64,000 bases of DNA from Paraphysomonas bandaiensis (taxonomy: Eukaryota > Protista > Chrysophyceae). Below the pieces are notes generated by a model that ran no database searches, was not told the DNA's origin, and saw only the letters and a program-made list of their open reading frames with translations. Position 1 is the stretch's first letter, and each line of letters starts with the position of its first letter. Location: contig CBFFRP010000263.1 of the NCBI GenBank assembly GCA_965644295.1, positions 62,001 to 126,000 on the forward strand, read 5' to 3'. Of this stretch, positions 6,191 to 62,352 are shown in pieces. The position numbers and the translations under genes were made by a program.

Positions 6191-9126
6191 ATGAGCTCAT
6201 CATCTCGCAATTCAATTACTTCATCTGTCCTTCAACAACAGTTGAAAATAAACATGAATGACTTTACCAAACTAGCTCCAATGGTGCTCCGTTTCGCTGT
6301 AAAGAAAGGCTACATGGTGAAGCAAGGGACTGTGAATAAATACTCAATGAAACGCCGTTATTTTGCTCTATTGGGATGCATGTAATCCTCTACTATATAT
6401 ATATATATGTATGTATCTGCTGATGATGATGTAGGCTGTTTTACTTTGAGAGTGAAGAGCCGGAGTCTTGCATAGGCTTTGTATTCACAGAGTGCTGTGT
6501 ATGTGACAACTCCCAGTCATCTGATTCACCAAAGAAAGAGAGTGGCTATGACGAATCATTCATGTTTACCATATGCACTGTTAGTGGTAAGCGCGTTACA
6601 CTGTTTGCGATCAGCAGCGAGGAGAGGGATTCATGGATAGCTGCGATTGAAAGTAATACATGTATGGCTCTTTCCCAACGAACGGAGGACCTAGACTTTA
6701 TCTCCTCACAAACAAGTCAACGACTTGAGCTCGCAGAGTCCGACTTGACGAGAGCCATACTTGCTCGTGAAACTCTTCAGCGTGAAATGGATAGCATTAT
6801 TCGAGAGAATATGATGTTACAGAATCGAATTGATATTCTGGAGAAGAATTTAAAGGAGACGACATCACGATTAGACTCGTCTGAGTCGGAGCGAAGGCTA
6901 TTGCTTAGCGCAAGTGGTGTCGTGCCTAAGGTTCTTCCATCCTGGTCTCTCTCTAATTCAGTGGCGCGAATATGGGTGGGGTCTTGGAACATGGGGGCCT
7001 CAGATCCGGTGTCATTGGGCAGTGGGAGTCCTTCTCTTGCTAGCACAATATCAAGGGTACAGTCCTTTGCACCACCAGGATACGACATCTACTGTGTAGG
7101 TGTACAAGAATGCATTAGTGAGACACTTTTTGACGCTTTGGATTCTGCTTTGGCACCCTCGGGGGTGAGACGCATTCGATTGGACAGCCAATTTGGGTCT
7201 GACGTAGCCAGGTACTACTTCAAGGAGGGTGACGGTGCAGCTGCAGGAAGCTCAAGTGCGCTACAGGAAGCCATTAGCTCCGATCCTTCAAAGCTGTGTG
7301 GACGGGGAGATGGGTCTCTTCTGTCACTTAAGTACACTGGGGTTGCCCTCTATGTGCACGAGCGATTGATGCCCGTTACCCGGGTTGTGGCAGTATCTCG
7401 TCGCCCTTTCTCTCCGATCCATAGCAAGGGTGGTGTTGGTGCAGTGCTCTCTGTAGCTGGACGCACTGTTGCATTCCTCACATGCCACCTGGAAGCTCAT
7501 AAGAACGATATCCGCAGGGAGCAATACAGGGAAATTGTGGGTTGCTTGGGCAGTCAGCTTGGGGAGGATGGCTTCCACTTATGCGAGCAGTTTCATCACG
7601 TGATATGGTGCGGGGACATGAACTACAGGCTAGTGGAGGAATCAGGTGGGGCTTCTCTCCCCTCTACTACAGCTTTGCGCTTGCTAGAGGAGCGGCAGAA
7701 CAGGAAACTGTTTGAGACGCATGACCAATTGAATCAGGAAAAACGTGCTCAAGAGGTGTTCTACGGATTTAGGGAGCCAGAGCCGTTTCCTAATTTTTTC
7801 CCAACGTATAAGAAGATAGAGCGACGACCGCCTGTTGATCCGTATGATTCTGGATGGGCAAGAGCCACTTACAGGGTCAAATACAAGGAGCCTTTTTACA
7901 AGGGGGGCATGGTCAAAGAGAGGACTCCAGGGTTCTGCGATCGTATACTCTATCACTCAATTACAGACCTCGCTGAGAATCTGGTCCCTGAACGGGTGCG
8001 GTTAGACCTGAGTCTAGAGCAGAATACAGCTCAATCTTTGAGTTTAAACAAGAAGCACGAATCTGAGCGGACCCTTTCACACGTCGTGGACAACTATCAG
8101 TCTGTTAATGGTGGAGATCCGTGGAATATGTCCGACCACTCTCCCGTGTTTGCTACATTTTTATTACGCCTTTTTGAAGACGAGACGAATCACACTGACA
8201 ATGATAAAACTGATTCTAGGAATGAATATGGAAAGGAATCAGACAGAAGTGTCGGAGAACACAACAATTCGTCATTGCTGACACCTTACTCCACCTCTAT
8301 ACTTCCTAGAGGGGTCTATCGCATTGTCTTAACAGATATAAAGGTGGTGTGGGGATCAATGGAGGAGCTTCCTTGCACTGTCGACTTATTGTTTCCCCTT
8401 CCTTTCGAGGTCTGATTTGATGTGTAATATAAGTGTTTCTGTGACGATAAACTGTTATAGGTTACAAACGGAGAAAATTTTGCGGACTACATATCAAATG
8501 GTAGACACTCATCGCAGTCCGTGAGAACCCCAAGTGCTGACAGTAGCGGGAGTGACGATTTAGACGATAATGTGATGAGCAGTCCAGATAGCAAATCGAG
8601 GGCACATAACCTTGGAAGCAGAGTGAGAAGAACTATTTTGGGTTGGCACAGTAGCGAAACCGCAACGCACACTTGCCTCGCCCTTCACTACAACAACACC
8701 GTTGCGGCTCTCTCCGGCAAGCGCGACATCGATCCAATAGAAATAATATGGCGAGGCAGTACTCCTGTCGATAGACTTCACCTGGCGTTGAGAGTGGGCG
8801 TAGATTCTGCCGTCATTATTCACAGCAGGCCTTCAGTTCGAGCATCGAATGCATCTGGGGCCGATATGTCTGATCGGATGATAGGTCATTGTACTCTTGA
8901 CCTGTCAAGAGTTTGTAAGACAGCCGCAGCATCTGACAGCGGTGTAAGAGGAAGTGTTTCAATGGCGCGCCAACTTATTAAAGATGGCGTCCCGATGTAC
9001 AACATTGATGTCGTTTCAATGCAGGCAAGTATAAAAAATCTTATTTTTTAAAAATCTAATCATTATTTACAGAGAGAAGTGGTCACATTTTATTGTAGCA
9101 TGGAAATAATGCCACATAGTGACTAA
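6191..9126 (+). CDS. PH domain + coiled coil + inositol polyphosphate 5-phosphatase (multi-exon)
   Basis: PH: KKGYMVKQG..MKRRYFAL..ERDSWIAAI. 5-phosphatase: WVGSWNM, VGVQEC, HLEAH, WCGDMNYR, PTYK, TPGFCDRIL, SDHSPV. The last exon (9073-9126) is reached via a probable GC-AG intron. Confidence 0.88.
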
Positions 9127-14192: not shown

Positions 14193-17100
14193 TTAAAGCT
14201 TATTCGACCCCCACAGCTGTGGCTCATCACTCATTTCGTAAGAAAGCGTACGGGCCTGCAGGAGTTCCTCGTGGTGTATCACTGGTGTGTCAATAGCCAC
14301 TTCATCCATAGTCAAAGACTTGACATAAGGCTTGTCACGGGCTCCAGAAGCAGCTATCGTAAGGGTATGGTCGGTCTGTGGAAACCTTACCTCAACCTTA
14401 TCAAATATAGGACTGCCAATCATATATTCGGCAGAGGCAGGATTGACAGGATAGAGACCAAGAGCATTGAACATGTACCAAGAAGACATCTGTCCGCAAT
14501 CTGCAATGAATATGCACAGATATTAGCGTTTCCTACGATAGAGTACAAGCCACACTTACCGTCATTGCCACTCAATCCGATTGGGGTATTATAGTAGTTA
14601 TTGCGAATAAGGTTGCGTATGGTGGACTGCGCCTTCCAAGGTTGGTTAGCGTAAAGGTATGCATATACCGTGGCGTGTGATGGTTCGTTTGCCTGATTAT
14701 TGTGATGACCGTTATAGTATTCATCCAGCTTGGCACCAAGTGCCTCAGGTCCATGGAAAAGGTCACGTAGACCAGGAAAGTCGTGCTGCACGTTAAACGT
14801 ATACACCCATTTATTTCCTTCTGTCCAAGTACTGGGATTCGGACACCACGAACCGTCTTTATGCCTCGCCTCCATAAACATCGTTTCATTATTAAAAATA
14901 TTGCGATAGTTTTTACTGCGGTCCAAAAAATACTGTTTATGCTCAGTGTGTCCAGTTAGCTCTGCTATGACCGCTACTGTGTAGTCGTCATATGCGTACT
15001 CCAGTGTTCGCGACCCTGCTTCAGATGTAAGTAGTGCCGCGACATATCCGAGTTCCAGCTCTCTCGTCAGTCCGGCTCGTGCTTCACAACCGGTTCCTCG
15101 TTGCCGGTCAAAGTACATAGTCGTAAGGTCATCTTCTGGGGGCACCATGGCATCCTTCAATACAGCCTTCCACGCAAGATCCTGATCAAAACCTCTGAAC
15201 CCTTTGGCTAGAGACTCAGCAATGAGAGAGCTAGAGTGGGTTCCAATCATAATGTTCGTTTCCACAATATTCTGCCACATTGGGAGCCTTCCACCCTGTT
15301 GAAAGGTCTGTAACATACTTTGTATCATACCATCGATACGCTCGGGTGCGAAAAGGTTTAAGAAACCCCATTCAGCCCTAAAAGTATCCCAGATAGAGTA
15401 TCCCGTATAAGCATGCTCCCCAGCGTGGACAGTGTTGTCGTAACCACTGTAGTAGAAAGATCCTGAGGCATTATATTCCATCATTTCATTGGGATACTGC
15501 CATTCATGAAATCAACGTTCAAAATAAAACACATCCATGGGTATCACACACCTGAAGCGCATGAAACATTGCAGTGTAGAATATAGCTAGTTCATCTTCC
15601 GTTGCGTTGGTAATGGAAACGAGATCCAGTTTATCAGACCACTTCTGTCGCACATAACTCGCGGTATCATCTAGCGATGTGCCGTCAGGAATTTCTGAGT
15701 TCAGATTGATCCGGGCCTGCTCGACAGAAATGTAGGAGACACCTACTCGTACATGCACCTTCTCTATCCCAGGTGGAAAGCGCACGTAAGCGGACAATTC
15801 AAGACCCTCTCCATAAGTGGCCCCTTCAAATAGGGTAGAGTTATTGGCCGTGCCCCAGGACTCAAAGCCTTCCTCGAATCGCGCTACAAAATATCCCTTG
15901 AAGTCAGCAGCAGAAAAGGGACCCAGAACAGAATCTTGTCTCTCAGGATTCCACCCGTATACCTCCCGTTGTTCGGGATCCACAGTGATTTGTCCGGATA
16001 CAGACTCTGTTGTCGCTTGCACCACAGCAAAAGGAGTCGATTTGGGGTCGAAAGTAAACCTCATCGAACCCGCACGAGATGTCCCTGTGAGCTCGGCTAC
16101 AATTGACGATTCCTCGTCAGTCTTCAATTTAGTACTGTAGTAGTGGGGTGAAGATATCTCATCCTCGTGACTGAAGCTCAAGCCTCTCTCCTCGAAACTA
16201 GTCCTGACCTCTCCTGTGCCTACAGCAACGGCAACTTGGCCAGACTCGCCCATCCTGCATAAGCCGCGTGAAGGTGAGGGTATATTTAAATAAATGTGGC
16301 CATATACTCATATTCATATAGAGACATGCATGTGTTACCAAACAGCGGGCTGATGAGTGCCCATATACTCATACATATAGAGACATGTGTGTGTTACCAG
16401 ACAGCGGGCTGATGAGTGCCCATATACTCATACATATAGAGACATGTGTGTGTTACCAGACAGCGGGCTGATGAGTGCCCATATACTCATACATATAGAG
16501 ACATGTGTGTGTTACCAGACAGCGGGCTGATGAGTGCCCATATACTCATACATATAGAGACAAGACATGTGTGTGTTACCAGACAGCGGGCTGATGAGTG
16601 CCCATATATTCATACATATAGAGACAAGACATGTGTGTGTTACCAGACAGCGGGCTGATGAGTGCCCATATACTCATACATATAGAGACAAGACATGTGT
16701 GTGTTACCAGACAGCGGGCTGATGAGTGCCCATATACTCATACATATAGAGACAAGACATGTGTGTGTTACCAGACAGCGGGCTGATGAGTGCCCATATA
16801 TTCATACATATAGAGACATGTGTGTGTTACCAGACAGCGGGCTGATGAGTGCCCATATACTCATACATATAGAGACAAGACATGTGTGTGTTACCAGACA
16901 GCGGGCTGATGAGTGCCCATATACTCATACATATAGAGACAAGACATGTGTGTGTTACCAGACAGCGGGCTGATGAGTGCCCATATACTCATACATATAG
17001 AGACAAGACATGTGTGTGTTACCAAACAGCGGGCTGATGAGTGCCCATATACTCATACATATAGAGACATGTGTGTGTTACCAAACAGCGGGCTGATGAG

Positions 17101-18091
17101 TGCCCATATATTCATACATATAGAGACAAGACATGTGTGTGTTACCAGACAGCGGGCTGATGAGTGCCCATATACTCATACATATAGAGACAAGACATGT
17201 GTGTGTTACCAAACAGCGGGCTGATGAGTGCCCATATACTCATACATATAGAGACATGTGTGTGTTACCAGACAGCGGGCTGATGAGTGCCCATATACTC
17301 ATACATATAGAGACATGTGTGTGTTACCAGACAGCGGGCTGATGAGTGCCCATATACTCATACATATAGAGACAAGACATGTGTGTGTTACCAGACAGCG
17401 GGCTGATGAGTGCCCATATACTCATACATATAGAGACAAGACATGTGTGTGTTACCAGACAGCGGGCTGATGAGTGCCCATATACTCATACATATAGAGA
17501 CAAGACATGTGTGTGTTACCAAACAGCGGGCTGATGAGTGCCCATATACTCATACATATAGAGACATGTGTGTGTTACCAGACAGCGGGCTGATGAGTGC
17601 CCATATACTCATACATATAGAGACATGTGTGTGTTACCAGACAGCGGGCTGATGAGTGCCCATATACTCATACATATAGAGACAAGACATGTGTGTGTTA
17701 CCAGACAGCGGGCTGATGAGTGCCCATATACTCATACATATAGAGACATGTGTGTGTTACCAGACAGCGGGCTGATGAGTGCCCATATACTCATACATAT
17801 AGAGACATGTGTGTGTTACCAGACAGCGGGCTGATGAGTGCCCATGAATCCCTTAATAGTCTCGTCTTCATACACATACGGGCACACTCCAACACTGTTT
17901 TTACGTGTAACAGGTGTCCATCTGGTCATTGCAAAGGGCAGTGCAGTGGATGGTATCATTCCTCCATAGTTACCATCATATAGAAGACGATCATCCGATG
18001 AGCCGATAAGAGGATTCACATAGACGATATTACTACATAGAGAGATAGAGAAAGTGAATGAGAGGAGAAGGGAGATGAGATAGGATGACAT
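14193..18091 (-). CDS. Secreted GH92 alpha-1,2-mannosidase; exons 18091-17820, 16254-15552, 15496-14560, 14500-14193
   Basis: Hydrophobic signal peptide, YVNPLIGS, PFAMTRWTP, GTHQPAVW|MGESGQ, SIWDTFRA, SRTLEYAYDD, TEGNKW, NEPSH, GND|DCGQMSSWY, GLYPV. All junctions GT-AG and in frame. Confidence 0.93.
16299..17845. repeat. Intronic minisatellite, 59/64-bp unit, ~25 copies, derived from the exon1/intron1 junction of the GH92 gene
   Basis: Unit GAGAC(AAGAC)ATGTGTGTGTTACCAGACAGCGGGCTGATGAGTGCCCATATACTCATACATATA; the last copy is the true coding exon end. Confidence 0.97.
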
Positions 18092-18441: not shown

Positions 18442-19200
18442 GGCCACTAATTATAGTGGAGACAAAAGACAAAACGACAAAAGACATTTTTTTTCATCCA
18501 AATTGTTTTTGTCGGGTGCAAACGAAGCCGTAATTATAGTGCACACAGAAAGACAAAAGACAAAACAGCGATTTTTTTTAGAATTTTGAATTCTACTCAT
18601 GTATGTATGTATGTATGTATGTATGTATGTATGTATGTATGTATGTATGTATGTATGTATGTATGTATGTATGTATGTATGTATGTATGTATGTATGTAT
18701 GTATGTATGTATGTATATGTATGTTTAAATCAACACACACTCTTCACCTTTCACAATCTGATAATAGTTATGGTTCCTGCCGGAATATACTCGGTCAGGG
18801 ATACGGTTTCATTGATGTAGATGTCAGTGCTTTCATTGTTGACAGGAGTGCGGCGTGTCGTAAGTAGTTTCACCGACATGTTTCTCCAAGCTCTGTAATC
18901 GTCGTGGTCTTGACACCATGGGTCTCCATGCCTGCCAAAGCAATGGCAAGCTTCTGCCAATCCTTGAGACTATAAATCATTGCGCCTGGTGCTGTTTATG
19001 AGGTGTATAACTATTAATGAAGCTCCATTGTGTAAAAATGTCTTCCACTCTCGATTTCTGTCCTTGAAGACAAAAAGACATAAATTTGCTCATATTTATG
19101 TCTTTCTGTCGGCCGAAGACAGAAAGACATTTTGTCTTTCGACGGATTTCTGTCTTTTGTCCTCCTATAACTACAGTTTGTCTCACTATAATTAGTGGCC
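18442..19200. mobile_element. Non-autonomous PIF/Harbinger-type TIR element (MITE), 759 bp
   Basis: 17-bp perfect TIR GGCCACTAATTATAGTG...CACTATAATTAGTGGCC. TTA TSD at 18439-18441 and 19201-19203. Subterminal AAAAGAC/GTCTTT repeats. Confidence 0.88.
18599..18723. repeat. (TATG)n microsatellite inside the MITE
   Basis: Directly visible array. Confidence 0.97.
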
Positions 19201-19237: not shown

Positions 19238-19408
19238 GGGGTGGTTGTGCATATCGATTTCATCGATTTGTTCATCGTTTATTTCATCGAAAAATCATCG
19301 TTTTTTCAGTGAAAAGTGAAAAAAAGTGACTTTTTAATGAAAAACCGATGACTTTTTGATGAAATAAACGATGAACAAATCGATGAAATCGATATGCACA
19401 ACCACCTC
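19238..19408. mobile_element. 171-bp foldback MITE with CTG TSD
   Basis: ~50-bp TIRs GGGGTGGTTGTGCATATCGATTTCATCGATTTGTTCATCGTTTATTTCATC / GATGAAATAAACGATGAACAAATCGATGAAATCGATATGCACAACCACCTC (1 mismatch). CTG at 19235-19237 and 19409-19411. Confidence 0.82.
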
Positions 19409-19422
19409 CTGTACATATCCTA

Positions 19423-19778
19423 CGAAGAGAAATACGTACTTGGATCGGAAATACAACACTGATACTACAGATCAATCAAACACTCACGGATCCAGTTCGC
19501 CCGTTGTCCTCCGTTCAAACTACACTACAGGTAGGCAAAAGACAAGTCTCTTTGCAAATACTACAGAAATCGTTAGTGATAGAAAATTATGGTGTCTCCC
19601 TACAACACAATAATACTACAGCTGATCATGTTCTACTGTACACTCTCACTCGTATCCTACAGAGTCACACATGTACAATGACTGAAAACATAATCACTGT
19701 AACAAAAACGAATGTGCACGTTGACTTTCATTTCCATCACTCGAAGACTTCTATACCGAATCATCATTTAGCTCTACG
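19423..19778 (-). repeat. 3' LTR (356 bp)
   Basis: Matches 24165-24317 plus 24807-25009. On the element strand it reads CGTAGAG...CTCTTCG. Confidence 0.93.
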
Positions 19779-22700
19779 CACCCCTGTGGCATGTGTATTG
19801 TTTCCCACGATACCACATGTCATAAACTTGTACAGAGTACCTTGGAGGGGCTTCGTCAATGCATCAGCCAGCATCATCTTTGTGGGCAAGTACTCCAATT
19901 GAATGCTTCCTTCATCTGCCCTTTCCTTGATGAATTCACGCCTCACACGCAGGTATTTTGTACGATATTTGCCTCCGCCTTTCGTTACAAGAGATAGAGT
20001 CGAGGTATTGTCTTGCAACACTCTAGGTGCGTCAATACTGTATCCTTGTTCCTTTATGAATTCTGCACATTGCACAATCATCATTAACATATCTGATAGA
20101 CCTACCAACTCTGATTCCGTCGAGTCACGTGTCACAATGCGCTGTTTCGACGATTTGCAGAGTACTGTTGCATCCCCCACCTTTACGACCAGACCCGAAT
20201 GACCCTTTCCATCGTCATGAGTCCCAAATGCCGCATCGACGTATCCAGTAATGGTAAGATTCTTTCCAATGCACAGCAACAAGTCCTGTCCCTTAGTCGC
20301 GTTCAGGTAGCGGGTCACCCTGCCAAGCTTCTCCATGTCAGCATGCGTCGGATTCTTGACTCTCGTGCTAAGGTAAGCGACTGCAAGCAGTATGTCTGGT
20401 CTAACCCTTTTGGCCAGGTACAGCAACTGAGCCACCATCTTGTGAAACTTCCTTCTATCACTCTTACTAGTGGGTTTGTCCATGGTGTTCTTAAATAGAG
20501 TAGCTGTAGCAGGTGATGTAGCAGTTCCTGTCACTCCGTGTTCTCGTAGAAAATTCTCGATGTACGATCTCATGGACACTGTCACCTTATCTCCCTCTGC
20601 TCTAATGTGCATTCCGAGATATGACAGATCTTTCCCATCGTCGTGCTTTACATCCCCAAACTTCTCTTTCAGTTTCTTAAGCAACTCTAGGTAGTCGCCC
20701 TTATGGCTTGACATGACCAGTATGTCATCCACAAATATCACCACTGTACACTTTCGCCCGCCAGCTACTTTGTTCATTACACATGGGTCGACCGCGTTGT
20801 GCTCGAATCCCAAACTTCTCAAATATCCTGTAAGCGTGTTGTACCAGAGTTTTGCACTCTGGATGCAACCGTATAGCGCCTTGTCCAGCCGCACTAGTAG
20901 TTTACCAGTCTCATCAACATACGGTGATACTTCAGGAGCCACTTTCTTCAATATCGTTGTTAACATTGGCTCTAGTTCCATTATGACTTCTTCGCCAGAC
21001 ATCTCGGCGTTCAGGTAAGCGCCTCCTATATCCATGATACCTATGTGACGTCCCTCTTTAGCAGCTATCGCCAGGCACATCATAATCGACTGCATCGCTG
21101 CTGTCGGTGACGATGTGTCTACGTACACCTTCCTATCTTGTTGTGCGCCATTAGCTACCAGTCTTGCTTTTATCTTTTCGAAGCGCCCTAAGCCATCATA
21201 CTTAGTCTTGAGAAACATCAGAGATCGAATAGCTCTCTTCAACTGTGTTGCCGATAATTCTTTGCGGTGTACTGGACGCATAGCCTTCTTGTCATGCAAA
21301 AGTTGTTTCAGCTCCGATATGATAGCGTTATATGCCGGTGGACCATACTCACGCAATCCCTTCATCGCACTCGTGTGAAAGGCCCTGTACTCTACTGGTT
21401 TCGACTTCGCATCCGGCGACCTGTCGTTCTCAACGCCTGTCTCGTCACTGCTTGTAATGCTGCTGCCGGACTTTATAGTTGGTACATCGTCATCCAGCTC
21501 CTCATCGACAAGTTCTGGCACTTCACCTTCATTATCACCGTCATGACCTAGTGGGTTTCCGCTATGCTCTACATCAACCACAGTAGTAGATACATCTTCC
21601 ACTATTGTTTCCGCAACTGGAGTCTGTTTAACGTCCTCTGGCGTACTCTCCTTCATGTCTTCGCCTTTCTGCTGCTCTTCTGCTTCTATCGTCTGTAGGA
21701 GTGGGTTCGGAATCTGACTCTTCCTAGTCGTATCACCCATCTTCGCCATCTGATTTATCGCATCAATTATGAGCTGCGTTGTCTTCATTTTCACCCAGTG
21801 TGTCCTTCTCACTCGCTTGTGTGTCTTCACATTCATGAAAAACCAGCTACCGTTGGCATTTCCAGTAGGGTACAATGCAATACACGGCTCAGTGCGACTT
21901 TGCTCGGCATCGTTGCTTCGCACCTTTGGGTTGTAGCACTCCACGTAGTCACCAAATGCTAGCTCTAGTTCCTTTCGGTAGTTAGGCTTCCTCCCTGTGA
22001 ACGCTACTCGTGGCGCTACTATGGATGTGCCTGTAGACGGCCTTCTGATATTTAGGCGACTGTTTGAGTACTTCACCAGATCTCTGACCATGTTATCAGG
22101 CAGTGACCAGGGTAATCCTGCCTGCACAGATCTAATAGTCTCTTTCAGTCTCCGGATCTTGTGATCTACCTTGTCCATGTGATCCCCTGCTCCACACACA
22201 TCCACTTCCACCCCTGTAATCTGTCCTCTGAGGGGTTGGAAACCAGGCTGCGGATCCAGATAGGCTACAGTTGGTGCGAAACCATGACTTCTTAGTAGAG
22301 ATACTTGCTCCTGAAAAGCTAGACCTAGATCATCAGTCCTCTCACTAGCTACCGGAGATACAAGAGTCAACCCCAGTGGCTCGGACAGTGTTATCAGGAA
22401 CGGTTGTTTTCTCACACTGAATATATCGGTATACAAACGTTGCGGCTTGGCCTGATCTGCTTTGATCCCCACGTCCATGTACTGCCTACCGCTCTTACGT
22501 TTAGTGGTCTTCCCCCTAACCGCTTCATAAGGCTTCCCGTATATGTCGAAAGCTCGCCTCACGTCTTGCGCCGTCAACGGCACGTCTGTTACATTTCCGT
22601 CGCTCACAAGGTTCATGGCTCCCTGCTCTGAGTCGAAACCCGCGTTCCGTACAAGTTCCAGCGCCCTTCGAGCTCTCATCACTTCGCTTTTAGTGTATTC

Positions 22701-24152
22701 TTGTTCTTTCATTCTTGTTGTCGTAATATTTACCCTGCCTTGTGTCACCCAATCCCTCATATCAGCTATATACATTTTGTTCCGTCTGTAGAACACTAGC
22801 TCTCTATTAGGTAGACACACCGTGTATGACACTCCTGGCTCGTACACAATAGGGTACAGATCTTCCACATCAGCTTGGCACAACACACTGACTCGTAGGT
22901 TGTCGGCGGTTTTACATGTGAAGAATTGTGGCAGCTCTCCCACATTGGGTAGTTCTACTGCGTGACCAGACAAGCCAGCTACTTTACACTTACGATCGGC
23001 AGGTCTCACATCTGTCAGTAGCCACGGGTGCACAACGGACACATCCGCCTGATTGTCTAGTAGAACTTCGTACCATTCGAAACGCTCTCCTCCCGATGTG
23101 AACGCATTCTGCATAGTCACTGAGCATTGTTTCTCCTCTGGCTCGACGTTCTCTTGACACTGGTTTAGCTTGTGTCCAGTCTTTCCACAACCCCAACATA
23201 CAATAGGGCCTCTATGCTTTCGCACGCTTCCTTTCGACTCGTCGGTCCCATTCGACTTCGTCTTGTCATCAGCATCACCTGTGCGACGCTGTTGTTTAGT
23301 CGAGGTGTCCTTCCTGCTCACAAACGCAACACCACCATTAGGTTTCGCTCCTCTCTTCGGGGTGATATACTTCGAAGCTTTAGTGTAGATCTCGTTCACG
23401 TGCTTGGGTGGCTTCTGTGTACCCATCATTAAGTCATTCATAAAACTGGTCTTAAACTCCTCATATCTGGTGTCGTCCAGACCCCTGAAGAAGTCCATAG
23501 CAATATCTTCTTCTTCCATCTTCGGATTCTCCATATCATTGTACGCTTCCAAAAGAAAATCGAAACGCTCCTTATAGGCCACTATACTCTCAAATGGACC
23601 CTGACGCACGTCTTGGTACTTCTTTCTCGTCTCTGCACGCATGATGGTCCCTACATTGGAGTTCGTCGCTGTTTTGTGAGTCTGCTTGATAGCAAGCCAC
23701 AACAGTAGAGGGTCCTTGGAGGAGTTAATCTCTTCGTATTCCTCCAATTGCTTAATCGCGTCCACGGACTCGTTGCTCAGTCTGTCATACATGAACGCAT
23801 AGAAAGCTGATCTGTTGTCACGCATTTGGTCAATCTTCCTTTGGCGTGTCTTTCTCGCATCCTTAAGTTCTTCCAGGTTCAGACCGTGGGGGTCATTATC
23901 AAGATCATAGTCCTCGATCTTTATCTTGGGTGGTTCATAATACTCATCGGTCTCCACGAGCCTCGCTAGGTCACCAAATAGCATCATGGCCGCCACTGTG
24001 AGCTTCTGCTTAAATACCGCCAGGTTGGTGTTCGTCCCATACTTCAGAATCGGCACCGTTGGGGTCAATGCCTCTGCCCCTTGGCCCCTGGACCGCTGGT
24101 CCAACGCCTTGTTCCTAAACTTCTTGAGCTTCTCGTTACTCGACTTCTTCAT
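19764..24152 (-). CDS. Copia gag-pol polyprotein (1462 aa)
   Basis: Zn knuckle CWGCGKTGHKLNQC; protease LLDNQAD; integrase core YTDIF..YLDPQ..VDHKIRRLKE; RT KARLVANG, DIGGAYLNA, KALYGCIQSAKLW, FVDDIL; RNase H YVDAAF, STESEL, QDNTS, MLADALTKPL. Confidence 0.97.
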   Translation of the reverse strand: MKKSSNEKLKKFRNKALDQRSRGQGAEALTPTVPILKYGTNTNLAVFKQKLTVAAMMLFGDLARLVETDEYYEPPKIKIEDYDLDNDPHGLNLEELKDARKTRQRKIDQMRDNRSAFYAFMYDRLSNESVDAIKQLEEYEEINSSKDPLLLWLAIKQTHKTATNSNVGTIMRAETRKKYQDVRQGPFESIVAYKERFDFLLEAYNDMENPKMEEEDIAMDFFRGLDDTRYEEFKTSFMNDLMMGTQKPPKHVNEIYTKASKYITPKRGAKPNGGVAFVSRKDTSTKQQRRTGDADDKTKSNGTDESKGSVRKHRGPIVCWGCGKTGHKLNQCQENVEPEEKQCSVTMQNAFTSGGERFEWYEVLLDNQADVSVVHPWLLTDVRPADRKCKVAGLSGHAVELPNVGELPQFFTCKTADNLRVSVLCQADVEDLYPIVYEPGVSYTVCLPNRELVFYRRNKMYIADMRDWVTQGRVNITTTRMKEQEYTKSEVMRARRALELVRNAGFDSEQGAMNLVSDGNVTDVPLTAQDVRRAFDIYGKPYEAVRGKTTKRKSGRQYMDVGIKADQAKPQRLYTDIFSVRKQPFLITLSEPLGLTLVSPVASERTDDLGLAFQEQVSLLRSHGFAPTVAYLDPQPGFQPLRGQITGVEVDVCGAGDHMDKVDHKIRRLKETIRSVQAGLPWSLPDNMVRDLVKYSNSRLNIRRPSTGTSIVAPRVAFTGRKPNYRKELELAFGDYVECYNPKVRSNDAEQSRTEPCIALYPTGNANGSWFFMNVKTHKRVRRTHWVKMKTTQLIIDAINQMAKMGDTTRKSQIPNPLLQTIEAEEQQKGEDMKESTPEDVKQTPVAETIVEDVSTTVVDVEHSGNPLGHDGDNEGEVPELVDEELDDDVPTIKSGSSITSSDETGVENDRSPDAKSKPVEYRAFHTSAMKGLREYGPPAYNAIISELKQLLHDKKAMRPVHRKELSATQLKRAIRSLMFLKTKYDGLGRFEKIKARLVANGAQQDRKVYVDTSSPTAAMQSIMMCLAIAAKEGRHIGIMDIGGAYLNAEMSGEEVIMELEPMLTTILKKVAPEVSPYVDETGKLLVRLDKALYGCIQSAKLWYNTLTGYLRSLGFEHNAVDPCVMNKVAGGRKCTVVIFVDDILVMSSHKGDYLELLKKLKEKFGDVKHDDGKDLSYLGMHIRAEGDKVTVSMRSYIENFLREHGVTGTATSPATATLFKNTMDKPTSKSDRRKFHKMVAQLLYLAKRVRPDILLAVAYLSTRVKNPTHADMEKLGRVTRYLNATKGQDLLLCIGKNLTITGYVDAAFGTHDDGKGHSGLVVKVGDATVLCKSSKQRIVTRDSTESELVGLSDMLMMIVQCAEFIKEQGYSIDAPRVLQDNTSTLSLVTKGGGKYRTKYLRVRREFIKERADEGSIQLEYLPTKMMLADALTKPLQGTLYKFMTCGIVGNNTHATGVRRAK
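19779..19785 (-). other. Short putative polypurine tract (AGGGG.TG) abutting the 3' LTR
   Basis: The element strand reads CCACAGGGGTG|CGTAGAG. The position is as expected, but the tract is short. Confidence 0.5.
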
Positions 24153-24165
24153 AATTTTCTATCAC
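24150..24165 (-). promoter_or_regulatory. Putative primer-binding site GTGATAGAAAATTATG, complementary to an LTR-internal motif; includes the gag ATG
   Basis: Lies at the 5' LTR/internal boundary. Exact reverse complement of the element-strand LTR motif at 19576-19591 and 24807-24822. Confidence 0.75.
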
Positions 24166-25009
24166 GAAGAGAAATACGTACTTGGATCGGAAATACAACA
24201 CTGATACTACAGATCTATCAAACACTCACGGATCCAGTTCGCCCGTTGTCCTCCGTTCAAACTACACTACAGGTAGGCAAAAGACAAGTCTCTTTGCAAA
24301 TACTACAGAAATCGTTAGGCCGTTCCTTACGGTTGGGTAAAAAAAAAATGAAATTTTTTTTCTTCCGCATTCTCAACACACCGTACCTTACGGTTGGTCA
24401 AAAAAAAAGATAACATACACATGATGAAAGCACCCATTTCTATAGGAGAAACTGTCAAAAACCTGTGTTTTGTAAAGAAAAGGGGGTTTCATGCCATATA
24501 TATTGAAAAGTTATATGTAGATATATTGGATGCATTATGCTGGTTCCAGGACACCGTTTGAATCACAACAAGCGCTCAGCCTACTCGACATAGACTTGGT
24601 AAAACTCGTGATAACAATAATATGACTCGAGGTTCCTAATATAGGCCGCAATATTATTTCTTACCATACCATGTATGTTGGAAAGAAATGAAATCATTTC
24701 TTACCATGATCCAAAATATTTTTTTTTTTGACCACCGTAAGGAACGGGAAGAGCAAGAAAAAAAAATTCATTTTTTATTTTTTACCCACCGTAAGGAACG
24801 GCCTTAGTGATAGAAAATTATGGTGTCTCCCTACAACACAATAATACTACAGCTGATCATGTTCTACTGTACACTCTCACTCGTATCCTACAGAGTCACA
24901 CATGTACAATGACTGAAAACATAATCACTGTAACAAAAACGAATGTGCACGTTGACTTTCATTTCCATCACTCGAAGACTTCTATACCGAATCATCATTT
25001 AGCTCTACG
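24165..25009 (-). repeat. 5' LTR, interrupted by a 486-bp MITE
   Basis: Removing 24318-24806 restores the 356-bp LTR sequence. Confidence 0.93.
24318..24803. mobile_element. PIF/Harbinger-type MITE (486 bp) inserted in the 5' LTR
   Basis: TIR GGCCGTTCCTTACGGT...ACCGTAAGGAACGGCC. TTA duplicated (24315-24317 / 24804-24806). The empty site ATCGTTAGTGAT is preserved in the other LTR. Internal second copies of CCTTACGGT near both ends. Confidence 0.96.
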
Positions 25010-37013: not shown

Positions 37014-40000
37014 ATGATATCTCCCTGTGACTTAAACGAGTCCTTCGAGTACTCTGTTTCTTCTCAGGGAGTAGATAATAGAGTCACCGAAACATGTTTT
37101 GAACGTCTAGTAAGAGGCAATGGAGGAGTACAGAGTCAGGATATTAAACTATCTAATTGTGACTGTAATGATGAGGACGAGGCCTGTGTCTTTACTCAGG
37201 TTGATGACACCAAATTAACATCCTTAAGCATGAAAGATGTGGACAGCATGGTACCTGTGCATCAGGTGGATATTGGCGAATCTGGAAGCAGCGTCCAGGC
37301 ATGCGTCGCATCAATATTTTCTCTTGGTATCAACGACCTTGTACAAAACGGAGGCTTGGTTCCGAGATTTTGTGAGCCAGAACAGCAATTGGAAGGAATT
37401 ATGAGGGAATGGTTAATGGCTACCAAATATCATTTTGTTATCTCTTACAGAGAAAACTCTACTCCCTTACCTTCTGTCAAACCGGGTTCCTTGTGCCTTG
37501 TATACGGCAAAAGTGCCTTGTCTTCTTTGCATTGTTATGTTGGTGTTGTGTTTGGGAAAGATGTGCGCATTGTACACGACCCTTGTGCACTCCCTGGAAG
37601 CAATATTGAAAGAGATGTTTCAGTGACAGAGATTCAATGGGTAGGATATTTTATTGAGGACAACAGTAGCTTGGATGATATGAGTCATACCTCTGCTAAG
37701 TGCAATACGAATGATAATGCCAGTGCTACTAATAGCGGTATTGGCCAGCATGACGGGTGTGTAGATGTCTGTACCCAAGAAGCTGATAAAGTGGAGTGGG
37801 CTGAAACAGTAGTGGACTTCCAGGAGGATGAGTTGTCCCCTTCAAGTCCTCCAACCCAGTCTGATAATCTGCCGCTTGAGAGTACTTCAGGAAATCAGGA
37901 GTCACGTAGTCTAGAAAAAAATAGCTCTCCAGGCCCCGAGAGTGCCTACGACGTTCGTCCTGATGAATCAGCTTCACATTCCCGTACATATCCACCACGT
38001 GCTCGTGGGTTGCTTCTTGGCTTTTCCCAATCGCAGGCACAGTCAGAGCAACCGAATGGTGATTTGAAAGCACAATTGACGATTTGCACTGATGAAACAA
38101 ATCATATTCGAGATAATAGTCTATCTGCATGCAGCTATCCAGATCATTCACAGACTCTGATGAAACTACAACTCGGTTTTTCTCAGACCCAACCTATGGA
38201 CACTGCTGTGGATGCAGAGCAAGGTACCGAACCTCGTGCAAGCCTTACAGATGGTGAACATAGTACGAATCCTACACATAATGTACCATACTCTGGTGCA
38301 AAGTCTCTGCAGCTTGGATTTTCACAAACGCCCCATACTGATCACCCCTCAGCACTCTCTTCGTGCAATATGAAGCCTCCAACTGGACCTCCGGCAAGAT
38401 GTGTTCAGCTGGGCTTTTCTCCCTCTCAAGCTGAAGGGGAAGGGAAAATGCCTCGTGTAGCTGTAGATGGAGAAGAAGTGGACGATAGGGACGACGTTGT
38501 GTATCTATCTGAACTGACTGCAAACACATGTTCAGCCTCGCTTTCACATCCAAGCAGTGTGGTTAGTCAGCTGCAGCATACAACTCTGTGCTTTAGCGGC
38601 GTATCGCAGCACTGCGAGGAAGAGAGTCGTTTATCTACTCACAGTCAAACCACCGGGGCGGCAGCCCCTCCAGCACTCACAGACGCTCGGAAAACAATAA
38701 GTGCCGATGTTTCCTATCGACCCTGCAGCGACGATAAAGACTCCCTCCCACCACTTTCCGACTCTGCAGACAGGACATGCGGTGACTGGATGGAATATGA
38801 AACTAATTGTTCAGAGTCAATGCCAGCCGCCAAATTACCTCAGGAGAGTAGATGTAGTGACTCTTCAGATGGATGGATAACCTCAAAGAGTGCACAACGG
38901 TCCTCCGTTCATGCAACTGCGAAAGAACTATCTCCCAATCAATTTGCTCCAACGGAAGAGGAGCCAGGGAATGACGACCCGAAACCGGCAAACATACCTT
39001 TCACTGAGGATTATGCGGGGGCATCGAGAGGTTGCGATGATTTATCTATAATCCCGCGAGAGGAAGATGTGGAGGTTCGTGCCATGGTTAAGCGTATAGC
39101 GGCCATGGAGCAGCAACTGCGTACAAGGGAAGCATACTTGGACGAGAAAGAGAAGCGGTTATCGGCACTTGAGGAACAAGTATTGGCCAAGCTCGACTGT
39201 GAACACTCTCTCAAACCTATTGAACATGCTTCCGTCCGTCCTGCAAATGAGACTCGAAGTAATGCTGAAGAAGCATCGCTGACGAAAGATAATCCTACTC
39301 TGGTGTCTATTGATGTCAAGGACAGGCGCAATGAGAAAACCACAGTTCAGTGCGAGTATTCTGCTGATGATTGCATGCCGGTCAGAAGTGACGGCGGAAG
39401 TAACTCACTGTCCCAAGGAGGTGCCCTTGCAGTGGATGGCCTTCTTCAGCTTACAAAAGGTGAAGGAAAGAAGCTTTGTAGCTTCTATGAACAAGAGCCT
39501 GTTCCACCCCAGAATACCAAAATGTTCCAGTGGTCAACCTTAGCTCGACCGCAATGCAACAGAACGGACTCAGGGAGCAATATGACACCAATGAAGCGCA
39601 GTCGACTCACTCGGAAAATGCCAGGAAACCGTCTGCTTGCCGTAGAAGGGGGCGACTCGGCCAACACCAGTCCCGTAAATGTTAACCGCGCTAGGCCACA
39701 TATTGATTCCACGTCCCTAGGAGAACAAAACAATGTAGACTGCTTTGAGTTCGATGGCTCCGAAAGTCCTGATGGTAACGGAGTAGGTGTTGACAAGTCG
39801 CCTACAAATGGCGGGGTAGCAATATCCGGTGAAAAAGCGAAGAAGTCATCTTCATCTCCAATATGTAATGTTCAGATGAATACCAATGACGAGGTTGGCG
39901 AAGAATGCGAGTGGGACTCACAGAAAGGCCCCTCGCCAACGAAAGGTATCTCCAAGGCCGTCTCAGCCGAGCGAGTTAAGCTGTGTGAAGACTCTTCTAA

Positions 40001-43000
40001 ATCAGATACAGGAGTATCGTTATTGGATATCCCGTCCTCTCTCTCGTCGGCCTGTGATATAAAATGCATGTCGTGGAAGTCTCTGTGGAAGGAACTAGAA
40101 TCTGTGGGCTGGTTTTGGCAACGTGGCCGTGGTCTAATCGATTTTGTTTACTGCCGCCCAGGCTGTAGGTATTTCTATGGAAGCGGAAAGCATGTTAACG
40201 ACAGTGTCACTGAGGGTAAGCACTGTTTCATGAGTCAGGATGATGTTACCAAATACCTGTTGAAACATGCAATAACTGATGCTAAGTTTGATAATGAGAA
40301 GAAAAAGAATGGTGATGGCGATGAGGCTGGAACACTTGTTGTGCCCGGGGAAAGTACAGTCTCCTCGAATACTGTTACCGGTGCTGATGATAAAAATTTA
40401 GATAGTGACAATCATGCTGCGACCCTAAAGTCACAGGAAGTTCCGTCAGATGGAGATGGCAAGGTGGCAGGTCAATCAGACGAAAACTGGCGGCAACAGG
40501 TTAACAGTATGTCTTGGGCGGAGCTTTGGTTGCATCTCTCTAATGAAGGATGGACATGGAACCACGGGTCGGGATTGGTTACCACATGGTACATGAAGCC
40601 GGGAATAGAGAAGCACAGCAAGGGAGTTGTGGGCGTGAGTGTGTTCACTAGTCAGGAAGAAGTTAGGGCTGAAGTGAGGCGCAGTATTTCATGTGACAGT
40701 TCTCCAGATCGACTGCCACGAGATGATAAGCACGAGTTAATCGAAGGTGGTGAAGTTGAATCATGGGAATTAGCCAGACATCGAGGGAAAAGGAAACTGC
40801 GCCCCAAACCTCCGTTGGAGGCATCTCCTTGTGGGTCATCAAAAGCGGGCGATAAATGCACGGGTAGCGCACAGCCATCGAGTTCGAGCAGCAACAAGAA
40901 GAGAGCAATCAGGAGTGCACGTGTGAAGAGATCCACTGGCAGAAGTAGGAAACGACAAGCGGTCGCTGCCCCTGAAGAGTCAACGCAGCAGCAGGTGCGG
41001 CTCAATGTATGTTACTCTTTTATGTTTATATTTTCCAGGTCACGTACGAGATACAATCCAATGATTGTAGTAGTACTAGCGAAAGTGAGAGCGAAAGCGG
41101 TAGTAGCGAAAGGGGTGCGTTTTTGGGGATTGCATGCAGGAGATATCGTGGGATAAGAGGAAAAGAAGCGACTGCGACTTTGGAGTGCGAGCAGAAACAG
41201 CTGATAAGTCGTATATCAGGGAAGAAATTCCGATATGATGAGGATAGTAGTAGCCACTGTGGCGGGGACAGCGAAGTGGAAGAAGTAACGGAAGAGCACA
41301 ACGGTCTGTTTCCACGGAGAGGAAGAAATGGGTGCAGACGCCCACCGCAGTTTCATGGTAGAAGTTTTAACCATGGCGGAGGTGTTGGACAGAGCGACCT
41401 AAGAGGTGTTCGGTTGACATCTCCGTCCTCGTGTAAGGTAGACCGCCCAACGAAAGACGCCACCTGTACACCGTCTTCTGGGAGCAATGCCCACAACATG
41501 GACAATGTAGTGCTGGAATCTACACCCGTTGGGACGATTGAGTGTATGCGGCCTGCACTCTTCAGAGTATCTCCTTCCCCTCCCCGGTCACTATATGGCT
41601 GTACCGCTCCTGTATATTCTACGTCCTCTACTAAAGTTCGTGCAGCCCGGTACTCTCCTTCTTATTGCTCCAAAATTTTCCGTGGCGTTAAATTTTTCTT
41701 CACTGGCTTGGATGAAACGTACACACCAGACAGGTAGAACAAATGTATCAATGAAGTTACGCTGACGAATATATAGGGCCGAACTTGAAGCCATTATCAA
41801 GAACCATGGCGGATGTGTGATAGACTTTGATATGATGATTAAAATAATTGGCAAGGTAGAAGATAGTTTAAAGAACAAAGTCGTCGTGCTAGCATCTCCC
41901 ACAGGGTTTCGTAGACCCAATTATCTTGTGGCACTAGCAGCTGGTTAGTAAAGTTTTGCATGCACTTCCTTTTTGATTTAGTGGGTGAGTAGGTATTGTA
42001 CATGTGCATCCGCAGTGGGTTGTGGATTCTGTAGATTCTGATTCATCTGTTGATCCTCTTCCAGTTGAGCACTACCTCCTGCCTTCAGGTGCATCTGTAC
42101 ACCATCCATACTTTGTATTCCGCAAGCAGGTATGCACATAGGTTGACGTAATGTTGTGTTTTATCTTTTACTCAGGTCCCACCTGGAGGAGTACTGAAGC
42201 AGAGACGGGTTCTACCCTTTACCAGCCCTGCATGGACTAAGATTCTTGAGTCAGCGGGCGCCTTACTCTGCGACAGCACTGACGAGTTTTTGAAGGACTG
42301 TCGCGCTCGACTTATGCGTCAGCGAGACACTGTCCAAGTCCGTGCCATGCTTCCCATGCCAGATATCATCGTCGTAGATTCGTTTTCCTACGCAGAGGAC
42401 ACTTTGACATCCGCACAGCTAGATTTGATAAGACAATGCAATTTCATTCTTAACTCGCGGAACAACTCTCGGCGAGAAAGGGTCCCACAGGTATTGCAGT
42501 TCTTTGACTTCGATTGCTTTCATGTGGGTTCATTGTGTCAGATTGTCAGCACTGACTGGGTGGCTCACTGTCTTGAGATTGGGGAGCTACTAGACGAGAC
42601 AAGCCATGACGTATTCACCATTCCAAGCAATCCTGTGCAACGTCCGGTTGTTTTCAAAGGCAAGTCGGGTGAGCGTTATGTGGTTGGTGACGCTGTCTAT
42701 TACGAATCGAACGCCGGGCGAATAGACGATCTATCATGGAGGTGCCATGATGCCCACACCATAGCCCGTAGCGGAAAGCGCTTGTTGGTGGGGTTAGTGG
42801 TATCTTTCTTTCGTAAAGGGAGGGGAGATACAGTACAAGTTAAGATCCGGCCACTTAGAGTACGTTGTAGGGAATGCTGTTGTCATATGCCAAGGAGAAA
42901 AGGTGAGAATCACAGTTACGAATTGTCTCTTGATGACGGCATACCGGAGTGTATTCTTTCGGCTGACAAGCTCCGTCATCACCCCGCCATACTCTCCCAC

Positions 43001-61974: not shown

Positions 61975-62352
61975 TGTATGTATGTATGTATGTATGTATG
62001 TATGTATGTATGTATGTATGTATGTATGTATGTATGTATGTATGTATGTATGTATGTATGTATGTATGTATGTATGTATGTATGTATGTATGTATGTATG
62101 TATGTATGTATGTATGTATGTATGTATGTATGTATGTATGTATGTATGTATGTATGTATGTATGTATGTATGTATGTATGTATGTATGTATGTATGTATG
62201 TATGTATGTATGTATGTATGTATGTATGTATGTATGTATGTATGTATGTATGTATGTATGTATGTATGTATGTATGTATGTATGTATGTATGTATGTATG
62301 TATGTATGTATGTATGTATGTATGTATGTATGTATGTATGTGTGTGTGTGTG
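61975..62352. repeat. (TATG)n microsatellite ending in (TG)n
   Basis: Directly visible perfect array of ~370 bp. Confidence 0.99.

Follow-up and report, generated by a model that had tools for sequence, protein, structure and literature searches.

The 64,000-nt window analyzed here (positions 62,001 to 126,000 of the forward strand of contig CBFFRP010000263.1, assembly GCA_965644295.1, of the chrysophyte Paraphysomonas bandaiensis) was found to contain a copia-type long terminal repeat (LTR) retrotransposon, recognized from its sequence and direct repeats, on the minus strand (25009–19422). The sequence adjoining the 5′ LTR of this element is an exact complement of a motif within the LTR itself, and pairings of the same kind but of different sequence were found in related families. 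It is probable that the element represents an old and widespread copia clade which does without tRNA primers and instead uses a self-primer similar to that of Tf1 of Schizosaccharomyces pombe.

The motif is a 16-mer, CATAATTTTCTATCAC, with three exact occurrences in the window, two on the minus strand (24822–24807 and 19591–19576) and one on the plus strand (24150–24165); the shuffle control for these three matches gave 0 of 100. The proposed self-primer is the minus-strand occurrence in the 5′ LTR (24807–24822, LTR positions 188–203), which sits on an initiator-like CCA, and a copy of it is present in the 3′ LTR (19576–19591). The plus-strand occurrence represents the primer-binding site, which on the element strand (24150–24165) consists of the last base of the LTR, G, followed by TGATAGAAAATTATG, and is complementary to the LTR motif at 16 of 16 positions. 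As target-site duplications set the LTR end, the LTR closes with the G at 24165 and the site proper covers the next 15 nt, of which the last three are the gag ATG. The motif lies 154 nt from the LTR end in the uninterrupted 3′ LTR, and a TATA-like TATTATT is found 24–18 nt upstream of it (24840–24846, minus strand). These results agree with an earlier note on this DNA, which had described the 16-mer in both LTRs with its reverse complement at 24165–24150, a distance of about 150 nt to the LTR end and the TATTATT about 20 nt upstream. It had also held that the site neither starts with TGG nor is of half-tRNA type, and the sequence after the 5′ LTR does read TGATAG, with no TGG start and no half-site for initiator methionine tRNA (tRNA-iMet). 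When the leader was folded from the motif to 30 nt beyond the ATG, all 16 pairs were present in the minimum-free-energy structure with probabilities of 0.94–1.0, the overall energy of the fold being ordinary (z = −1.1). Under a published operational criterion (PMC6317226), a self-primer shows complementarity of 10 bp or more between the 5′ LTR and a site lying 0–5 bp after the LTR, and the element qualifies on both counts.

Covariation of primer and site and the search for a tRNA primer

To relate this pairing to other elements, relatives were collected by protein search, which returned hundreds, mostly on 5-kb metagenome contigs. The set used for the study of covariation comprised 22 families, namely the window family and 21 sisters from metagenomes and assemblies, drawn from locus L069, 80 further loci and six looked-up contigs. 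In 22 of 22 families the site, read from the last LTR base, paired perfectly over 12–16 nt with a segment 56–148 nt upstream, while shuffled upstream regions gave pairings of at least 13 nt in one of 1800 trials and of at least 14 nt in none. The primer sequences of these families are of 21 distinct kinds with 18% G+C and vary at every position of the duplex. Wherever the LTR end of a family is defined, its last base is also the first base of the duplex. In the nearest relative of the set, L069 (65% identical protein), the LTR sequence CATAATTTTCTCTTAC pairs with GTAAGAGAAAATTATG, the LTR ending in G and being followed by TAAGAGAAAATTATG; two compensated double changes distinguish this motif and site pair from that of the window element. 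The pairing of L072 includes a one-base bulge. The compensatory changes by which the earlier note had proposed that its idea be judged are thus present in the sister families.

A number of observations weigh against this reading. The pairing of L109 extends over only 9 nt, that of L073 could not be resolved, and the set leaves out sister families of the same genome that are 77%, 63% and 41% identical. Within the window family, the motif varies between T and C at position 9, and the partner base in the site between A and G. The two variants correspond in 12 of 16 copies (13 of 17 if L016 is counted), the remaining four carrying discordant combinations (two C·A and two U·G). Ten copies retain the site together with both LTRs, and nine of them agree throughout. 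The association between motif and site variants has an r2 of 0.24, which is not above the background linkage at 38 informative sites. That the variable positions within the family are exactly the paired ones is notable, but carries little weight as evidence.

Two of the related loci showed further features. L109, a distant relative on metagenome contig Ga0105054_10030683, has a tRNA-like sequence with the T-arm GGGGATTCGATCCCC on the reverse strand between the polyprotein stop and the LTR. In L150 (GCA_040384245.1, JAWVHA010005924.1), three related elements lie head to tail with single LTRs between them and 315 nt between their ORFs (open reading frames), an arrangement of the kind produced by recombination between LTRs or by integration of concatemers.

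Copies of the primer sequence outside the family were also looked for. No tRNA or Rfam match was detected in the window with ARAGORN and Rfam. Within the 62.5-Mb genome the exact 16-mer, in its T or C variant, was present 50 times, as 35 LTR motifs and 15 primer sites which all belong to the family itself; no separate non-element locus was found among these exact matches, eight further sites with one mismatch not having been inspected. It is very hard to credit that a host tRNA or tRNA fragment complementary to TGATAGAAAATTAT primes the element, with the LTR match a coincidence. Internal halves of tRNA-iMet or tRNA-Ile do serve copia and related lineages (PMC6317226), and the start of the motif, CATAA, bears a superficial likeness to the anticodon loop of tRNA-Met. 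However, the exact 16-mer is confined to the LTRs and primer sites of the family, the site has no TGG start, the low G+C content of the primer sequences is unlike that of tRNA, and the 21 different site sequences each have their match in their own LTR.

The other copia elements of the same genome provide a contrast. At least 764 candidates with the reverse transcriptase (RT) domain RVT_2 were present in the genome, and in six other copia families that were readable in full the LTR is adjoined by TGGTAGCGGATG, TGGTAGCAGA or TGGCAGCGGATG, sites of the type complementary to the 3′ end of tRNA-iMet. Priming by tRNA is therefore the norm in this host and the window family the exception. In a tree of RT and RNase H sequences, the families with the LTR pairing formed one clade with support of 100/100 and long internal branches, separate from these six families, so that self-pairing is an old trait, shared throughout the clade. 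It should also be noted that several RVT_2 families of the genome (L061–L067) have intact ORFs of 1500–1800 amino acids and a tRNA-iMet-type site which leads straight into the gag ATG (TGGTAGCGG-ATG).

Taken together, the covariation between families, the lack of a non-element copy of the primer and the contrast with the tRNA-iMet families strongly support a self-primer. These three lines of evidence favour the Tf1-like mechanism put forward in the earlier note, though they fall short of proof.

Transcript start and the proposed priming mechanism

The element is transcribed. Poly(A) metatranscriptome runs contained 58–60% of its sampled words, and contigs of three RNA or probable RNA runs spanned the element including the junction between U5 and the primer-binding site. 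The transcriptome MMETSP1103, labelled as Paraphysomonas (chrysophyte), contained a polyprotein of the same 90%-identity cluster.

The location of the transcript start is suggested by the position of the pairing. In other elements, plus-strand synthesis copies the tRNA primer. If the primer were the RNA of the element, plus-strand synthesis would copy it to its 5′ end, and complementarity is therefore expected to end exactly at the transcription start. At the 5′ edge of the pairing a CA was found, with its A at −1, 0 or +1, in 20 of 23 families, preceded by T in 15 of these 20, and alignment on the first paired base gave the initiator-like consensus TTCA(Y)WATTT. The placement of the pairing edge on an initiator-like TCA fits an mRNA 5′ end at this point.

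It is proposed that transcription starts inside the LTR at the initiator-like (T/C)CA, giving an RNA that would begin with (C)AUAAUUUUCUAUCAC and whose poly(A) site would lie downstream of the motif. The 5′ end of this RNA would fold back onto the 15–16 nt adjoining the 5′ LTR, or would pair with the same region of a co-packaged RNA, the duplex being formed in cis or in trans. The RNase H of the element would then cleave the RNA where the duplex ends, and the freed 3′-OH would prime minus-strand strong-stop DNA across about 150 nt of U5 and R, which would be transferred to the R region at the 3′ end. Later plus-strand synthesis would write the primer back into the site, and because of this recopying primer and site would stay complementary even as their sequence drifts freely. 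The copy of the motif in the 3′ LTR would provide the motif for both LTRs of the daughter element.

The same self-primer could also be internal to an RNA which starts further upstream, in which case it would be cleaved out with a 5′ extension or supplied in trans. The chemistry of priming requires just a 3′-OH at the end of the duplex, and the start proposed above is not helped by the TATA-like box, which is not conserved among the sister families and keeps no fixed distance. The RNA runs are also silent on this point, since they were used as Logan contigs, which show the presence of the element and the U5-to-site junction but not RNA ends or strand; two such contigs (L154 and L155) break within the LTR and are uninformative on ends. 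An upstream start is nevertheless unlikely, as it leaves unexplained why the edge of the complementarity is pinned to an initiator-like TCA in 20 of the 23 families.

Another explanation gives the pairing a different role, as a long-range RNA structure acting for example in packaging, dimerization, cyclization or translational control, with some other host RNA as primer. Functional long-range pairings are present in the leaders of Ty1 and of retroviruses. Repression of translation would also be expected of a stem that starts at the cap, and the AUG of the window family is within the duplex. However, the paired site is exactly where the minus-strand primer must bind, its first base being the last of the LTR in all families, and no other tRNA-like site is present at the LTR edge. 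The sites of the 22 families also have no common sequence which a single host RNA could match, and the overlap of the duplex with the AUG is not conserved. A structural role in place of priming is thus considered quite improbable, and self-priming from the 5′ end of the RNA is preferred.

The earlier note had further suggested that the duplex, by covering the gag AUG, could switch the RNA between translation and reverse transcription. As a feature of the lineage this had to be abandoned, for the ATG lies in the duplex only in the window family and L069, whereas elsewhere a gap of 1–76 nt separates the end of the site from the ATG. A cap-proximal stem might repress translation in all families, but this is conjecture.

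Spliced antisense RNA was also detected, on the plus strand at 19422–22300 of the window, across the 3′ LTR and the region of RNase H and RT. The RNA contigs concerned (X1, X2 and X5) skip the segments 19531–19662, 20027–20099, 20254–20306, 20373–20417 and 21015–21061, all five of which are bounded by canonical GT..AG dinucleotides when read on the plus strand, antisense to the polyprotein, and the splice joints were not present in a DNA run (X18). The longest ORF of the spliced product is at most 116 amino acids. In X1 the spliced contig has approximately ten times the depth of the contigs of the gag half, although such a per-contig mean is a poor measure of expression.

Anatomy of the element and neighbouring repeats

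The 5′ LTR (24165–25009, minus strand; direct repeats D3 and D4) begins with CGTAGAG, ends with CTCTTCG and consists of 357 bp into which a 486-bp miniature inverted-repeat transposable element (MITE) with a 3-bp target duplication has been inserted. The 3′ LTR (19422–19778, minus strand; D3 100%, D4 99%) is uninterrupted at 357 bp, and a single mismatch separates the two LTRs. The LTR ends, CGTAGAG…CTCT(A/T)CG, follow from the clean 5-bp target-site duplications that flank five further genomic copies (AAGAA, ATGTA, ATACA, GTGTA and GGTAG); on the two flanks of the window copy no matching 5-bp duplication was found. A purine-rich tract, ACAGGGGTG, lies immediately before the 3′ LTR (19779–19787, minus strand), with CAGGGGTG retained in sister families.

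Between the LTRs is a single intact gag-pol ORF of 1462 amino acids (19764–24152, minus strand), as found by ORF and domain searches. It contains a CCHC zinc knuckle (amino acids 319–332, nt 23157–23198, minus strand) and an RVT_2 reverse transcriptase (amino acids 973–1212, nt 20517–21236, minus strand; PF07727, 3.7e-30). Only about 250 amino acids, the RNase H region, follow the RT, which leaves space for an RNase H but none for an integrase, an arrangement consistent with copia. No match for a protease or an integrase was obtained for this ORF in Pfam or PDB sequence searches. In the stretch of about 640 amino acids between the zinc knuckle and the RT, residue D576 is invariant and D633 and E671 are nearly invariant, with a spacing like that of the D,D35E triad. 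Features of Ty1/copia elements are thus present in the form of the RVT_2 RT, the LTRs, the 5-bp target duplication of the other copies and a Gag with a CCHC knuckle. Tf1/sushi (Ty3/gypsy) elements are marked by a gypsy-type RT and the gene order PR-RT-RH-IN, often with a chromodomain. Here the RT is RVT_2 with about 250 amino acids after it and the element groups with copia families, so that by descent it does not belong to Tf1/sushi. The element is most likely a Ty1/copia-type retrotransposon of a stramenopile protist, and one that is young, intact and transcribed. At least ten genome copies have intact ORFs (listed as open frames of 1464 amino acids), and this number, the near-identical LTRs, which differ by one base, and the presence in RNA data make the element look active.

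The MITE in the 5′ LTR (24318–24803, no strand assigned) has the terminal inverted repeats GGCCGTTCCTTACGGT, is Harbinger/Tourist-like and is bordered by a TAA duplication (24804–24806 and 24315–24317). Its insertion point is 3 nt past the self-primer motif, so that it splits the 5′ LTR of the window copy and shifts the motif 486 nt farther from the primer site. Neither the 3′ LTR nor the other copies carry this insertion, and in the latter the motif-to-LTR-end distance is 169 nt. A second, palindromic MITE-like element of approximately 170 bp with arms ATGTACAGGAGGTGGTTGTGCATATCGATTTCATCG adjoins the 3′ LTR (19250–19421) and was also seen at L027 and L030. The 3′ flanks of two other copies of the retrotransposon (C159 and C629) likewise begin with (GG)TAGGATATG, which points to a favoured target or to a duplicated segment that the copies have in common.

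Elsewhere in the window, a tandem array of 59–64-nt units was present at 17006–17856 and an (ATGT)n microsatellite of approximately 120 bp at 18599–18722. An ORF of 617 amino acids (6562–8415, plus strand) was found to contain an endonuclease/exonuclease/phosphatase domain (PF22669, 2.5e-27). A further ORF of 1380 amino acids (37014–41156, plus strand) was considered as a retroelement and ruled out, having no Pfam match and no LTRs or flanking repeats.

Significance and comparison with known self-priming systems

To our knowledge, experimental self-priming is known only for Tf1 and Tf2, and among copia elements it has been predicted only in silico, for one plant lineage. The present work contributes a copia clade from aquatic protists which is deep, rich in species and transcribed. 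Its comparative signal is unusually clean, with 21 primer sequences, all of them compensated, and the tRNA-primed copia families found alongside it in one genome provide a contrast from within. It offers a natural series of compensatory variants for studying the excision of a primer from an RNA duplex, and permits the question of whether abandoning tRNA primers escapes host control aimed at primer sites. It also follows that pipelines for the annotation of transposable elements which demand a tRNA-type site will mis-score an abundant lineage. A broader scenario is put forward with slightly more doubt than confidence. According to it, an ancient copia clade of marine and freshwater protists replicates without host tRNA and rewrites its site in each cycle from the capped 5′ end of its own RNA. 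Primer and site would then be able to drift to any AT-rich sequence, and the elements would go unseen by silencing based on tRNA fragments. The trait would have arisen independently of Tf1/sushi and of the plant TAR lineage, or else would be ancestral to LTR elements.

No published self-priming in copia elements of diatoms or other stramenopiles, and no publication on Paraphysomonas retrotransposons, was found in a literature search that had subscription journals outside its reach. Among the closest known systems are the CoDi elements of diatoms (Maumus et al., 2009; PMC2806351), which are likewise stramenopile and Ty1/copia-like and share the single gag-pol ORF, the short LTRs and the duplications of 5 bp; the paper that defined them mentions neither primer binding nor tRNA nor priming. 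The GalEa copia elements of fungi resemble the window element in having no tRNA site. There, a conserved hairpin site replaces the primer-binding site, and its authors found no complement in the LTR (PMC5445492). The two differ in that GalEa has a local palindrome or hairpin; no such hairpin is present in the window element, in which the complement in the LTR is clear.

For Tf1 and Tf2 of S. pombe, self-priming was shown experimentally (Levin, 1995, 1996; Lin and Levin, 1997, as cited in PMC7175516); according to the same source, the first 11 nt of Tf1 RNA pair with the site and RNase H then cuts behind them. The window element is like Tf1/sushi in that it has no tRNA site, that the site adjoining its 5′ LTR complements the LTR at the presumed RNA start, and that primer and site covary among relatives. 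It differs in being copia, with an RVT_2 RT followed only by RNase H, whereas Tf1 belongs to Ty3/gypsy. The protist duplex is also AT-rich, measures 12–16 nt and includes the last LTR base, compared with 11 nt in Tf1, and the start and RNase H cut, which are experimental in Tf1, are here only proposed. Among copia elements, self-priming was predicted in silico for the plant Ty1/copia TAR lineage (Houba and Osr-1; Neumann et al., 2019; PMC6317226). This prediction precedes the present one, and self-priming in copia is consequently not new in itself. TAR and the window element are both copia-type with a predicted self-primer in the 5′ LTR under the same criterion of at least 10 bp and 0–5 bp. 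They differ in their hosts, which are land plants for TAR and stramenopile protists and plankton here, and the protist polyprotein is very divergent, RVT_2 being the only domain recognized in it by Pfam. The clade described here is thus most likely a new lineage of an already known type of priming.

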